64,000 nucleotides of DNA from Octopus sinensis (GCF_006345805.1 NW_021833962.1:1-64000), one strand, 5' to 3'; shown: positions 27,386 through 55,699, counted from the stretch's first letter. A program made the numbers and translations. Notes: generated by a model not told the origin, from the sequence alone.

Positions 27386-29440
27386 GACATAGGCGCAGGA
27401 GTGGGTGTGTGGTAAGTAGCTTGCTAACCAACCACATGGTTCCGGGTTCAGTCCCACTGTGCGGCATCTTGGGCAAGTGTCTTCTGCTTTAGCCCCGGGC
27501 CGACCAATGCCTTGTGAGTGGATTTGGTAGACGGAAACTGAAAGAAGCCTGTCGTATATATATATATATATATATATGTGTGTGTGTGTTTGTGTGTCTG
27601 TGTTTGTCCCCCTAGCATTGCTTGACAACCGATGCTGGTGTATTTACGTCCCCGTCACTTAGCGGTTCGGCAAAAGAGACCGATACAATAAGCATTGGGC
27701 TTACAAAGAATAAGTCCCGGGGTCGATTTGCTTGACTAAAGGCGGTGCTCCAGCATGGCCGGAGTCAAATGACTGAAACATGTAAAAGAGAGTATATATA
27801 TATATATATATAATAACAAAGGGTAAAATTAATTAATTGAGAAGTAATCAATAATTTCACCAAGTAGAATTCGGGATGAAAAATGGACCATTTCACGGTA
27901 AACTTAAGTAATACTTTATAATTAGGGTTCAGCAAAGATTTGCTTTACCAGATACCGAAGTTTAGAAATAGCAGCCAAAACCGTAGCTATTTCTTCTACG
28001 TTAAAAAGTTCGGGTTAGGGTTAGGGTTCTAATTTTTAAAGTAGAAGAAATAGCTAAGGTTTGGCGGCTATTTCTAAATTCGGTAGGTGGGTTAAAGCAA
28101 ATCTTTGCTGAGCCTTTATTATAAAGTATTATATTATATATATATATATATTATATATATATGTATATGTATATATATATATATGTACGTACATACGTTC
28201 ATACATACACACACCACACACACAGGCACACACATGGGAAGACACATGCACGCATATATAATGCTTGCATATATGTATGTATGAAGGAATGAATCACAGA
28301 TTGATAGACAGACAGACAGATAGCTAGCTAGCTTGATAGATAGGTAGATAGACAGATAGACAGGTAGATAGACAGATACATAGATAGACAGGTAGATAGA
28401 TAGACAGACAGACAGATAGATAGATTGATGTGTTTCTTTATTAGCCAAGCAGGGCTGCACGCAGACAGGACAAATTACAAGGTAGAGCTTTTCTTTTGGG
28501 GGTAAAAAAAAAGGGGTTTGGTTTTCGATCAAAAGGGATCGTAAAAGGAAAGAAAGAGGACAAAAAAGGAAGGGGGGGGTTGATCAATAGGGATCGTTAT
28601 CACAGAAATGTCAATATGAAGTGTAAAGGGGAGGACAGGTGAGGTTTACCCGTGGAAAGAAAAGCCTACGGAAAAGACCACAGTAACCTCGAGACAGGTA
28701 GATAGATAGACAGATAGACAGATAGATAGATAGACAGACAGACAGATAGAGAGACAGGTAGATAGATAGATAGACAAATTGATAGACAGACAGATAGAGA
28801 GATAGATAGATAGATAGATAGATAGATAGATAGATAGATAGATAGATAGATAGATAGATAGAAAGATAGATAGATGGATAGATAGACAATAGATAGATAG
28901 ACAGACAGACAGATAGAGAGATAGAGAGATAGATAGATAAATAAATAGTGAGTGTATGTGAGTGGGTCGGGAGAGCCTTATGAAACCTTATGCGTACGTA
29001 TATCCCCCTCCCCTTCTCATTCTTTTCTCACTCCTTCTCATAACTTTCCCTCTCTTTACTCTGTATATCTATCATGTCTACCTATTTCTGCTATATCTCT
29101 TTCTTTCTCTCGTTTCCATGTAGCTGTCTTCCTTCCTCTCTATATCTCTCTTTTTACCCCCTCTCTCACTCTCTATTTCTTTCTTTCCCCCTCTCTCCCT
29201 CCCTCACTCTTTCCTCTCATTCCTCTCCCTCTACCACTCTGTCATATGTGCAACAACCAAAGTTCGAGTCGGTAACACCGGCCTCTTCCCTTTCTTTCTC
29301 TCTGTTCCATGTGACTGTCTTCCTTTCACTCTCTCCCCCTCTCTCCCTCCCTCACTCTTTCTAATCATTCCTCCCCCTCTATCCCTCTGTTACGTGAGCA
29401 ACAACCCAAGTTCGAGTCGGTAACATCCGGAAACACCCGG

Positions 29441-29552
29441 CTCTTTCCGGCCTCTTCTCAAGCAGACGACACCTTTCTAAAGAGACGTCCATTTGGCCTT
29501 TTGAGCCATTCTTCACGCAATCTTCCCTCTTTTCTACACTTTAAAGGTAAGA
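29441..29552 (+). promoter_or_regulatory. Putative TCT-type start, ATG-less ~104-nt leader and 5' splice site (unit 1; repeated in all units)
   Basis: CTCTTTCC at 29441 preceded by CCGGAAA; no ATG up to AAAG|GTAAGA. Donors at 29547, 32040, 33965, 36626, 38586, 41201, 42922, 44929, 50073, 52029 and 54228. Function is inferred. Confidence 0.45.
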
Positions 29553-29838
29553 TTACTTTATTATTTCCAATAAAAAATATTTAATTCCCTTCGTTTGCTT
29601 CAAATTTTGATCTTTTTCTGGAAAAGCATTTTTCCCCTCCAATTTTACGGTTAATTTGTTGAAAGAATGGAAAATGAGAAAAGCAAAAAAAAGTGAAAAA
29701 TATTCTTGAAAAATGAATGAAAAATTGTTTCTCATCCATAAAATATCAGTAATTTATTGCATGTTTAATATATTATATGTCTTTTTATGTCGGTGAAATA
29801 ATAAAAATAATTTGTTTATGAACGGAAATATTGATATT

Positions 29839-52013: not shown

Positions 52014-52262
52014 TTCGACACTTTAAAGGTAAGATTACTTTATTATTTCCGGCCTCTTCTCAAGCAGACGACACTTTAAAGGTAAGATTACTTTATTATT
52101 TCCGGCCTCTTCTCAAGCAGACGACACTTTAAAGGTAAGATTACTTTATTATTTCCGGCCTCTTCTCAAGCAGACGACACTTTAAAGGTAAGATTACTTT
52201 ATTATTTCCGGCCTCTTCTCAAGCAGACGACACTTTAAAGGTAAGATTACTTTATTATTTCC
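52014..52262 (+). repeat. 53-bp minisatellite carrying five copies of the leader splice donor (unit 10)
   Basis: ctttaaaggtaag at 52021, 52074, 52127, 52180 and 52233. Confidence 0.92.
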
Positions 52263-55200
52263 AAAAAAAAATATTTAAATACCTTTGTTTGCTTCAAATT
52301 TTGATTTTTTCTGGAAAAGCATTTTTTCCCTCCAATTTTACGGTTAATTTGTTGAAAGAATGGAAAATGAGAAAAGCAAAAAAAAGTGAAAAATATTCTT
52401 GAAAAATGAATGAAAAATTGTTTCTCATCCATAAAATATCAGTAATTTATTGCATGTTTAATATATTATATGTCTTTTTATGTCGGTGAAATAATAAAAA
52501 TAATTTGTTTATGAACGGAAATATTGATATTTGTGAACGAAGTTATATAAAGAATTGTTTAAAATGATTTTTGTGTGAGAAATTCCCTTCGATTCGTCGA
52601 AGTTTTCAAACTTTTGGCCCCTTTTCTTTCATCTTCATGTTTTGGGGAAACGAAATATGTGAATGACTGTTATTATGTTTGTTGTCCACAAACGTTTACT
52701 CTGAGCATGTGTCCCAACCACATGGTGGGTTCAGTCCCACTGCGCGGCACCTTGGGCAAGTGTCTTCTACTATAGCCTTGGGCCGACCAAAGCCTTGTGA
52801 GTGGATTTGGTAGACGGAAACTGAAAGAAGCCTGTCGTATATATGTATATATATATATATATATATATGGTGTGTGTGTATGTGTTTGCGTGTCTGTATT
52901 TGTCCCCCTAGCATTGCTTGACAACCGATGCTGGTGTGTTTACGTCCCCGTAACTTAGCGGTTCGGAAAAAGAGACGATAGAATAAGTACTGGGCTTACA
53001 AAGAATAAGACCGGGGTCGATTTGCTCGACTAAAGGCGGTGCCCCAGCATGGCCGCAGTCAAATGACTGAAACAAGTAAAAGATAAATATATATATATAT
53101 ATATATATATATATATATATATATATATATATATATATATATATATATATTATTATGTAATATATAATAACAAATGGTAAAATTAATTAATTGAGAAGTA
53201 ATCAATAATTTCACCAAGTAGAATTCGGGATGAAAAAAGGACCAATTCACGGTAAACTTAAGTAATACTTAATAATTAGGGTTCAGCAAAGATTTGCTTA
53301 CCAGATACCGAAGTTTAGAGATAGCAGCCCAAACCTTAGCTATTTAGTCTACTTTAAAAAGTTAGGGTTAGGGTTCTAATTTTTGAAGTAGAAGAAATAG
53401 CTAAGGTTTTTGGCTGCTATTTCTAAACTTCATTATGTGGTAAAGCAATCTTTGCTGAACCCTAATTATTAAGTATTACTATACATATATATAAATATAT
53501 ATATATATATATATATATATATATATAAACATATATATATATATATATATACATACTACATACATACATACATACATACATACACACACAGGCACACACT
53601 CATGGGAAGACACATGTACGGATACATACAAAATGCTTGCATATATATATATAGTATGTCAGTATGAAGGAATGAATGTCAGATTGATAGACAGACAGAC
53701 AGATAGACAGATAGCTAGATAGATAGACAGACAGACCGATAGATAGAAAGACAGGTAGATAGACAGACAGACAGACAGACAGATAGATAGATAGACAGGT
53801 ACATAGATAGATAGATAGTGAGTGTATGTGGGTGGGTGGAGAGAGCCTTACGAAACGTTACACGTAAGTATATCCCCCTTCCCTCCTCGTCCTCCGTTCA
53901 CTCCTTCTCATAACTTTCCCTCTCTTTACTCTGTATATCTATCATGTCAGACTCTCTTTTCTTGCTATATTACTTTCTGTCTCTCAGTTCCACGCAACTG
54001 TCTTCCTTTCACTCTCTCCCTCTCTATCTCTCCCTCCATAACTCTTTCCATCATTCCTCCCCCTCTACCACCCTGTTACGTGAGCAACAACCCAAGTTCG
54101 AGTCGGTAACATCCGGAAACACCCGGCTCTTCCGGCCTCTTCTCAAGCAGACGACACCTTTTAAAGAGTCCATTTGGCCTTTTGAGCCATTCTTCACGCA
54201 ATCTTCCCTCTTTTCGACACTTTAAAGGTAAGATTACTTTATTATTTCCAATAAAAAATATTTAATTCCCTTCGTTTGCTTCAAAATTTGATCTTTCTGG
54301 AAAAGCATTTTTTCCCTCCAATTTTACGGTAATTTGTTGAAAGAATGGAAAATGAGAAAAGCAAAAAAATGTGAAAAATATTCTTGAAAAATGAATGAAA
54401 AATTGTTTCTCATCCATAAAATATCAGTAATTTATTGTATGTTTAATATTTATATGTCTTTTTATGTCGGTGAAATAATAAAAAGAATTTGTTTATGAAC
54501 GGAAATATTGATATTTATGAACGAAGTTATATAAAGAATTGTTTAAAATGGTTTTTGTGTGAGAAATTCCCTTCGATTCGTCGAAGTTTTCAAACTTTTG
54601 GCCCTTTTCTTTCATCTTCATGTTTTGGGGAAACGAAATATATGAATGACTGTTATTATGTTTGTTGTCCACAAACGTTTACTCTGAGCATGTGTCCCAA
54701 CCACATGGTTCCGGGTTCAATCCCACTGCGTGGCACCTTGGGCAAGTGCCTTCTACTATAACCTTGGGCCGACTAATGCCTTGTGAGTGGATTTGGTAGA
54801 CGGAAACTGAAAGAAGCCTGTCGTGTATATGTATATAGATATGCGTGTGTGTCTTTGTGTCTGTGTTTGTCCCCCTAGCATTGCTTGACAACCGATGTTG
54901 GTGTGTTTACGTTCCCATAACCTAGCGGTTCGGCAAAAGAGACCGATGGGAGAAGTACTGGGCTTACAAAGAATAAGTCCCGGGGTTGATTTGCTCGACT
55001 AAAAAAAGGCGGTGCTCCAGCACCAATAAAATATCAGTAATTTATTGTATGTTTAATATATTATATGTCTTTTTATGTCGGTGAAATAATAAAAATAATT
55101 TGTTTATGAACAGAAATATTGATATTTACGACCGAAGTTATATAAACAATTGTTTAAAATGATTTTTGTGTGAGAAATTCCCTTCGATTCGTCGGGGTTT

Positions 55201-55699
55201 TCAAACTTTTGACCTTTTTCTTTCATCTTCATGTTTTTGGGAAACGAAAGATAGCTTCATGAAGAGAATTGATGCCTGTTTTATTGCGGAGGGAACTCAA
55301 TTTGAGCATTTGTTAGGATGAATATTAATAAAGTGTTTCTTCATGTTGGGTAACAGATGGATGTCAGATGGGATTTAAATCGGGAGAGTTCAGAGGATGC
55401 AAATATATATATATATATGGTAAGTAGGTTGCTAACGAACCACATGGTTCCGGGTTCAGTCCCACTGCGTGGCACCTTGGGCAAGTGTCTTCTGCTATAG
55501 CCCCAGGCCGACCAAAGCCTTGTGGTGGACCTGGTAGACGGAAACTGAATGAAGCCTGTCGTATATATGTGTATATATACGTTTGTGTGTCTGTGTTTGT
55601 CCTCACCATCGCTTGTAACCGATGTTGGTGTGTTAATGTTCCTGGAACTTAAAGGTTCGGCCAAAGTGACTGATAGAATAAGTACTAGGCTTACAAAGA

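Follow-up and report, generated by a model that had tools for sequence, protein, structure and literature searches.

Why should a promoter-like block, a leader free of ATG and a consensus 5' splice site be repeated eleven times in a row? This question is raised by a 64,000-nucleotide stretch of Octopus sinensis DNA (GCF_006345805.1 NW_021833962.1:1-64000), referred to here as the window, for which an earlier note had offered three readings: a set of non-coding exons that act as alternative first exons of a gene outside the window, a cluster of donors for spliced leader (SL) trans-splicing, or an inert amplified promoter fragment. The last of these turned out to be the best fit, given the identity of the units over their whole length, a leader that evolves like an intron and several decaying copies. 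Accordingly, we consider it probable, at about 0.6, that the locus is a lineage-restricted macrosatellite whose promoter/leader/donor cassettes are passengers without array-level function, and the best explanation for the sameness of the cassettes across copies is common descent together with concerted evolution, rather than selective pressure on a system formed by the array.

An array of eleven head-to-tail units

The tandem array of units of about 2 kb that the earlier note had described is borne out by a 20-mer, CACTTTAAAGGTAAGATTAC, present without mismatch at 11 plus-strand loci in the window (29537, 32030, 33955, 36616, 38576, 41191, 42912, 44919, 50063, 52019 and 54218), against 0 expected from shuffled sequences, and the limits proposed for it, 27391-55250, agree with the edges that we measured (Table 1). 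Every unit (11/11) bears the invariant CACTTTAAAG|GTAAGATTAC, with donor-to-donor spacings of 2493, 1925, 2661, 1960, 2615, 1721, 2007, 5144, 1956 and 2199 bp, and unit lengths that range from 1.7 to 5.1 kb. When one unit was compared with the window by blastn, it was the entire unit of about 2 kb, beyond the core alone, that proved to be duplicated, at 93-97% identity. This head-to-tail arrangement of kilobase units, similar over their full length, is that of a macrosatellite.

Past the donor, each unit runs through about 480 nt of AT-rich sequence, a short interspersed nuclear element (SINE), a TA microsatellite, a hairpin element, TACA and GATA microsatellites and a CT-rich tract, before the next core is reached. 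Lengths between 1.7 and 2.7 kb reflect chiefly differences in the microsatellites, and unit 8 reaches 5.1 kb because a fragment of a long interspersed nuclear element (LINE) has been inserted in it. The endonuclease and reverse transcriptase of this LINE provide the only long open reading frames (ORFs) within the array, and the ORFs of the LINE copies, which are of the non-LTR (long terminal repeat) retrotransposon type (46128-48988 on the plus strand, 58197-61310 on the minus strand and 63829-64000 on the plus strand), are interrupted by stops or frameshifts. As the 55254-64000 interval is also devoid of a credible exon, the earlier observation that no coding exon occurs in the units or before the window end is upheld.

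The SINE belongs to a dispersed family, with at least nine copies elsewhere in the window, including those at 5258, 12274, 13684, 23181, 24707, 25616, 55438 and 56532. The hairpin element has 101-nt arms that are 95% complementary, with telomere-like TTAGGG repeats in or near the loop; its 11 copies occupy the pre-array segment and units 1 to 10, the truncated unit 11 being devoid of it, and no copy was found beyond the array in the 64-kb window. If transcribed, this element would give rise to long double-stranded RNA.

The promoter-like block, leader and donor

In 10 of the 11 units the cassette follows a common order, namely, a CT-rich tract of about 250 nt, (T/C)ACGTGAG, GTTCGAGTCGG, CCGGAAAC, the putative start motif CTCTTTCC, an ATG-less stretch, the donor AAAG|GTAAGA, and AATTTTGA. 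The stretch from CTCTTTCC to AAAG, referred to as the leader, is free of ATG in all 11 units, as claimed in the earlier note, and the last 30 nt or so of it read CAATCTTCCCTCTTTTC[TG]ACACTTTAAAG. The motif AATTTTGA is indeed found 56 nt past the donor in 10 of 11 units and is degenerate in unit 11, where CTCTTCC does stand for CTCTTTCC. Other claims held in part. First, the upstream core is uniform in most units, save for unit 7 (donor at 42912), in which everything upstream of CTCTTTCC is gone, including TACGTGAG..GTTCGAGTCGG..CCGGAAA, and for unit 9, which reads CACGTGAG. Second, the leader of about 104 nt is ATG-less and followed by an invariant donor, but it is not uniform: it measures 106 nt in six units, 110 nt in three, 109 nt in one and 101 nt in one. 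Its length departs from the usual 106 nt in five of the 11 units, and 13 of its columns are variable. Third, the hairpin proposed at the donor exists, but it is marginal (-1.5 to -2.5 kcal/mol). An extra partial core lies about 150 nt upstream in units 1 and 9 (in the latter at about 49756-49817), as well as in the only assembled unit of O. vulgaris, described below.

To what extent do these motifs point to a promoter? The TCT consensus, YYCTTTYY, covers positions -2 to +6 of the starts of ribosomal-protein genes (PMC4102762). It is fitted by CTCTTTCC; CCGGAA and (T/C)ACGTG boxes are located 20-50 nt upstream, and the consensus donor AAG|GTAAGA some 104 nt downstream. Because of the TCT match, the upstream CCGGAA boxes and the consensus donor, the cassette is a reasonable first-exon candidate, and we see roughly even odds that its ancestor was a genuine RNA polymerase II start followed by a non-coding first exon; promoter activity and any splicing of the cassettes are putative. 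The evidence from motifs is effectively n=1, because all copies share one ancestor.

The frequencies of the motifs should be read alongside. An exact YYCTTTYY match is found at the start motif in 10 units, with 99 further matches on the plus strand of the window, and the CT-rich tracts hold many of the extra matches to YYCTTTYY or CTCTTTCC. The 72 kb that lie outside the array, when both strands are counted, contain 46 YYCTTTYY, 12 RAU4-6GR and a single AAGGTAAGA. The lack of ATG in the leader is unremarkable, as 34% of leader shuffles and 19% of random 106-nt windows share it. The 156-nt core has a CpG observed/expected ratio of 1.06-1.16, versus 0.63-0.69 for the array and the remaining window, which is compatible with an unmethylated regulatory islet, yet higher CpG densities are reached elsewhere in the window.

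Sequence diversity and decay of the copies

Diversity was estimated as pairwise pi between units, segment by segment. The 50-nt promoter-like part showed a pi of 0.009 (10 units; blastn may have trimmed one more variable site), and the leader 0.044, plus 21 gapped columns. For the intron we obtained 0.042, 0.016 and 0.026 at positions 1-100, 101-300 and 301-480, respectively; for the SINE 0.066; for the hairpin arms 0.032 and 0.050; and for the CT-rich tract, which is poorly alignable, about 0.11. The leader thus evolves no more slowly than the sequence around it, and more rapidly than much of the intron, so that the comparison of core and spacer put forward as a check in the earlier note speaks against a conserved leader, whose pi is no lower than the 0.016-0.042 of the intron. 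Likewise, no weight attaches to the invariance of the donor, as conservation in the adjacent intron is just as high or higher. The warning in the same note that conservation between young duplicates does not prove selection turns out to be the main point, with a leader that behaves like the intron in a unit that is 93-97% identical throughout.

The leader region also differs between units by insertions and deletions of +3, +4, -1 and -4/5 nt, and it is therefore not coding; these differences also weigh against a fixed functional sequence. A coding exon was rejected on these grounds: although the leader frame is open, length differences of +4, -1 and -4/5 nt separate the units, and there is no homologue. 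Protein searches with the plus-frame ORF that spans promoter, leader and donor, and with a concatenate of five core and intron ORFs (both strands), which between them covered every frame of the leader, gave no match; likewise, a 32-nt string from the leader was absent (0 hits) from the metagenome contigs scanned.

Several copies are decaying, by deletion of the promoter-like part in unit 7, slippage in unit 10, erosion in unit 11, and insertion of the LINE and of a 404-bp sequence in units 8 and 1, respectively. In unit 10, the repeated 53 bp join the donor and 22 nt of intron to the start of the leader, which adds four donors for a total of five; this repeat is evidently very recent and reflects slippage at short stretches of homology that leader and intron have in common. 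In unit 11, the TCT motif has lost 1 nt, the leader 4/5 nt, and the Sm-like site is mutated. Variants common to non-adjacent units give rise to a mosaic pattern, as after repeated unequal exchange or conversion, with which it would fit.

As a separate observation, the 404-bp insert of unit 1 holds GCGCATGCGC twice (one copy being imperfect) and the palindromic ACTTCCGG..CCGGAAGT, which are motifs of the NRF1/ETS-like promoter type. It is found neither in the remaining units nor in the O. vulgaris unit.

Edges and probable origin of the array

The edges of the array point to its probable origin. The first SINE copy has a complete start and the last one a truncated end, whereas in the internal units the SINE starts at CCAACCACATGG and the intron tail takes the place of its head, always with the same join point, such that the internal junctions are SINE/intron hybrids. 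We propose that a segment X was once flanked by SINE copies A and B, and that unequal exchange between A and B would have produced A-X-(B/A)-X-...-B. One segment of about 2 kb would thereby have been amplified to 11 copies, which were afterwards partly homogenised. The founder segment would have consisted of the SINE, the hairpin element, the microsatellites, the CT-rich tract and a 50-nt block with ETS- and E-box-like motifs, followed by a TCT-type start motif, an ATG-less stretch of about 106 nt, a consensus 5' splice site and about 480 nt beyond it. The promoter/leader/donor cassette would then be a passenger of the duplication. Coordinates of all these features are included in Table 1.

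Table 1. Features of the tandem array and their positions in the window.
Feature	Position	Strand	Remarks or basis
Whole tandem array, 11 head-to-tail units plus terminal fragments	27391-55253	+	blastn, reading of edges
First SINE copy, complete 5' head; left edge of array	27391-27790	+	
Extra partial core upstream of unit 1	29241-29291	+	
Unit 1 core	29391-29546	+	50-nt promoter-like part (TACGTGAG..CCGGAAAC..CCCGG) and 106-nt ATG-less leader; GT donor at 29547
Private insertion in unit 1	29846-30249	+	404 bp, ATATTT at both ends; unit comparison
Unit 2 core	31884-32039	+	Promoter-like part and 106-nt leader
Hairpin element, unit 2 copy	33028-33248	.	Like a miniature inverted-repeat transposable element; blastn
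Unit 3 core	33806-33964	+	109-nt leader (+3 nt)
Unit 4 core	36466-36625	+	110-nt leader, +4 nt variant CTTCCCTTCTCAGCAG
Unit 5 core	38430-38585	+	
Unit 6 core	41045-41200	+	
Unit 7, leader and donor only	42812-42921	+	Promoter-like part and CT-rich tract deleted
Unit 8 core	44773-44928	+	
LINE fragment in unit 8	46128-48988	+	Endonuclease and reverse transcriptase domains; ORF and domain search
Unit 9 core	49917-50072	+	CACGTGAG variant
Unit 10 core	51869-52028	+	110-nt leader
Slippage repeat in unit 10	52016-52262	+	Perfect, 53 bp x 4.7
Unit 11 core, eroded	54077-54227	+	
Last SINE copy, 3'-truncated; right edge of repeated block	54696-55022	+	
Stray copy of intron positions 202-426	55026-55253	+	Followed by non-array DNA with more dispersed repeats

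Some observations weigh against a macrosatellite with passenger cassettes. First, chance would seldom place an Sm-like motif at a constant distance from a donor (about 2% per 100 nt). Second, the promoter-like 50 nt are the least variable segment despite their five CpGs, although two variable sites at most over 50 nt is not significant, with a Poisson P of 0.09-0.28 depending on the rate chosen. Third, the first-unit leader and its O. vulgaris counterpart differ at none of their positions (0/106), whereas the flanks of the two genomes differ by 1-7.5%. The low diversity of the promoter-like part and the identity of the leader are hints of constraint, but neither is significant at these lengths (P of about 0.05-0.3, by a Poisson estimate). 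Fourth, crossing-over between SINEs is a putative mechanism, deduced from the edges.

Possible alternative first exons or internal exons

If the founder cassette was a genuine start, its copies would be, at most, redundant cis alternative first exons for a distant downstream gene or a long non-coding RNA. A stronger form of this idea, which corresponds to the first reading of the earlier note, is that the array functions in cis as a set of alternative promoters, each with its non-coding first exon, with a TCT start in each unit and AAAG|GTAAGA spliced to a common acceptor beyond 64 kb. The cassette has the architecture of a TOP (terminal oligopyrimidine)-type promoter with its first exon (PMC4102762) and is intact in 10 of 11 units, and both the lowest diversity of the array, that of the promoter-like block (0.009), and the identity of the first leader with its O. 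vulgaris counterpart count in its favour. A target downstream is conceivable as well, since the array shares its strand with the upstream gene, which ends before it, and non-coding DNA lies beyond the array; and Snrpn offers a precedent, as each of nine U exons there has a promoter of its own and is spliced to exon 2 (PMC3248558). However, no acceptor or coding exon is found in the 8.7 kb after the array, which hold only SINE copies and an antisense LINE (58197-61310, minus strand), and ORFs of at least 55 amino acids in 55254-64000 are derived from LINEs or other repeats, which led us to reject a downstream exon there. Common acceptors or constant exons, absent from 55254-64000, could lie past the window; in O. 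vulgaris, no annotated protein gene has a range that extends over the homologous stretch. Moreover, the leader evolves like the intron, the loss of the promoter in unit 7 and the slippage in unit 10 have been tolerated, near-identical copies offer no regulatory diversity, and the core was not found within 10 kb at the corresponding O. bimaculoides site. We therefore regard such a cluster as possible, yet rather unlikely.

The same leader may be parsed in a different manner, as internal exons, repeated from unit to unit, of a long non-coding RNA that would be transcribed across the array, perhaps as a host of intronic hairpins serving as precursors of hairpin RNA or small RNA. An acceptor ..CTCTTCTCAAGCAG|ACGAC within the leader and the donor AAAG|GTAAGA would then delimit exons of about 82 nt, with the exon of the next unit reading ACGACACC... 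Indeed, a pyrimidine-rich stretch that ends in CAG, about 24 nt into the leader, is kept in 11/11 units, even in unit 7, the 250-nt CT-rich tract precedes the core, and hairpins with 101-nt arms of 95% complementarity occupy 11 of 12 intervals, all but that of the truncated unit 11. Yet this parsing has a pure sequence-pattern basis: acceptor-like strings are common beside CT-rich DNA, the Rfam scores of the hairpin fall far short of the threshold and are such as any long inverted repeat would give, and no small nucleolar RNA (snoRNA) or microRNA family is matched. These internal exons thus seem improbable, well below the odds of a cluster of first exons.

Other identities were tried and rejected. 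A host gene for snoRNAs or microRNAs would require small-RNA genes, none of which is recognisable in the intron of each unit (Rfam, gathering score). The core does not behave as a dispersed transposon, as its copies are confined to the array in the sequence compared (the 64-kb window, with some 40 kb of flanks from O. vulgaris and O. bimaculoides), an extent too small to speak for whole genomes. Nor is it a copy of a neighbouring promoter, there being no similarity to those of the two upstream genes (a TMEM-like gene and ELMO, described below).

Evidence for and against trans-splicing

The most far-reaching of the three readings of the earlier note was that of a cluster of SL RNA genes, in which each unit would specify a short capped RNA whose 5' part, of about 104 nt, is trans-spliced onto many mRNAs. 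The tandem arrangement and a 5' part that lacks ATG and ends in AAG|GU are as anticipated for such genes. So is the RAU4GR motif (AAUUUUGA) 56 nt past the donor in 10 of 11 units, all the more with only 12 RAU4-6GR in the 72 kb outside the array, and in the predicted fold the donor is weakly paired with exon sequence. Yet known SL exons are about 16-51 nt long and invariant between gene copies. The octopus exon, with its 101-110 nt, exceeds the known length 2-6 times, and it is variable, with insertions or deletions in five of 11 copies, and kept no better than the intron.

Structure and gene content argue in the same direction. The fold of the 195 nt from the TCT motif to past the Sm-like site (-28.4 kcal/mol) gave z = -1.12 versus shuffles, and that of 111 nt around the donor z = +0.34; that is, the fold is no better than shuffled, and no stable stems flank the Sm-like motif. 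Rfam gave no match in the whole window at gathering score, and at E<=10, with one unit and the core alone as queries, nothing relevant, only sub-threshold noise on microsatellite and hairpin DNA; the lack of a match to SL or any other family even at E<=10 is weak evidence, SL RNAs being lineage-specific. The window contains neither a tRNA gene (ARAGORN) nor a 5S ribosomal RNA (rRNA) gene (Rfam), and the unit, of 1.7-5.1 kb, is mainly transposon and microsatellite DNA without 5S or other small-RNA genes. In addition, the start motif is of the TCT/TOP type, not of the small nuclear RNA type, and the core was not detected at the syntenic O. bimaculoides site. Thus, this reading fails on exon length, exon invariance, structure, Rfam, linkage to 5S and synteny with O. 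bimaculoides, and we hold it to be extremely unlikely. SL trans-splicing is unproven in Mollusca (PMC3795323), and a full-text literature search for it in cephalopods returned incidental mentions only; in the extremely unlikely case that it operated here, it would be without precedent among cephalopods.

Comparison with known systems

Macrosatellites are tandem repeats with kilobase units, each with a promoter or the 5' end of a gene, such as human D4Z4, DXZ4 and RS447. The octopus array resembles them in its head-to-tail kilobase unit, identity across the unit, a CpG-richer promoter-like islet in each unit, degenerate copies at the edges and difficult assembly, as seen from the gap at the array site in O. 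vulgaris. It differs in that it has just 11 copies, and in that its unit is largely SINE, hairpin and microsatellite sequence without an ORF.

Variable first exons are also known from the protocadherin alpha and gamma and UGT1A clusters, where they are long, coding and diversified, such that each copy contributes to a different protein. A tandem series of promoter, exon and donor ahead of presumed constant exons is common to these clusters and to the octopus array, whose candidate exons, in contrast, are non-coding and near-identical. Mouse Snurf-Snrpn likewise has several duplicated non-coding first exons, the U exons, with their own promoter and donor (PMC3248558), an arrangement that the octopus candidates, which would splice to a common downstream exon, may share. 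However, the U exons extend over more than 100 kb, and their transcription, their splicing into Snrpn exon 2 and a role for them have been demonstrated (PMC3248558), whereas the octopus cassettes are candidates.

With SL RNA arrays the octopus locus shares a tandem arrangement, an ATG-less 5' exon with a GU donor and a downstream motif of Sm form. In nematodes, SL1 repeats are linked to 5S rRNA genes (PMC3795323); in contrast, the octopus unit has no 5S gene, is filled with transposons, and has a TOP-type start motif and a putative exon that is several-fold longer and variable. As for TCT/5'TOP promoters (PMC4102762), the octopus cassettes resemble them in the exact YYCTTTYY match, the short candidate non-coding exon with a strong donor and the ETS-like CCGGAA just upstream. 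Unlike these promoters, the octopus cassettes are not associated with a ribosomal-protein, translation-factor or snoRNA gene, and their motif lies at the end of a CT-rich tract with further chance matches.

A macrosatellite with passenger cassettes would call for caution, in that one candidate promoter and first exon, copied eleven times, can mimic a dedicated system. It would also be of modest value to octopus genomics, as it would mark the repeat that breaks the O. vulgaris chromosome assembly, document the formation of a macrosatellite mediated by SINEs in the O. vulgaris group, and provide a concrete locus for redundant TOP-type promoters. If the cassettes were active and fed one distant gene, they would represent a non-coding counterpart of the variable-first-exon clusters, and interest would be broad solely under the very unlikely outcome of a spliced leader.

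Genomic setting and occurrence in other octopuses

The array starts 2.8 kb past the stop codon of a two-exon gene on the same strand (exon at 22970-23040 and ORF at 23843-24580, plus strand), which is similar to TMEM70, TMEM186 and TMEM223. Its product has two predicted membrane helices and matches the Pfam profile over its full length at E = 3e-4, just short of the curated cut-off. Homologues include an O. vulgaris 'hypothetical protein' (96% identity), O. bimaculoides LOC128251295 (84%) and a transcript-derived run-assembly protein (74%). The intron of this gene contains a SINE, and AATAAA follows the stop codon. The next gene upstream corresponds to ELMO (engulfment and cell motility), with exons on the minus strand at about 8989-9369 and 16548-16817; the ORF at 8989-9369 was assigned by reading its sequence, not by Pfam, and may be taken as ELMO. 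In both O. vulgaris and O. bimaculoides an ELMO gene is annotated as the upstream neighbour (ELMO_ARM and ELMO_CED12 in both, ELMO_N in O. vulgaris only).

In O. vulgaris, OX597843.1:5557537-5579190 is collinear with positions 14132-25080 of the window, and divergence in the flanks is typically 3-5%. A unit occurs 2 kb past the TMEM-like gene, which matches the site in the window, in the order SINE, hairpin element, microsatellites, CT-rich tract with the extra partial core, core, leader and donor, intron, SINE and hairpin; both leader and donor are identical to those of the first window unit. This first repeat unit is interrupted by a gap of 100 Ns (OX597843.1, about 5,572,966-5,573,065), beyond which lies a low-complexity repeat with no match in the window; in O. 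vulgaris, the array has probably collapsed in this gap. The sole assembled unit nests among those of the window, with a divergence of 0.7% to unit 8 and of 1.5% to unit 1, as compared with 1-6.7% between window units; therefore, the amplification is probably older than the split of the two genomes. In O. bimaculoides, a sensitive search of the 10 kb after the orthologous gene found SINEs and no core, although about 3.5 kb of Ns mean that absence is not proven. The macrosatellite is thus so far restricted to the O. vulgaris group.

Apart from the array, the window contains a near-perfect palindrome at 3122-5256, with a centre at about 4185 and arms of about 1 kb, in three blocks, that are 97-100% complementary. 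These arms include an ORF fragment (..GRRQCNLCVSE..) that has no Pfam match. Two further tandem arrays, both of 97% identity, were observed at 10327-11274 (195 bp x 4.9) and 14975-15849 (184 bp x 4.8); judging from their translated sequences, the former looks derived from the tail of a retrotransposon and the latter from a SINE-like element.

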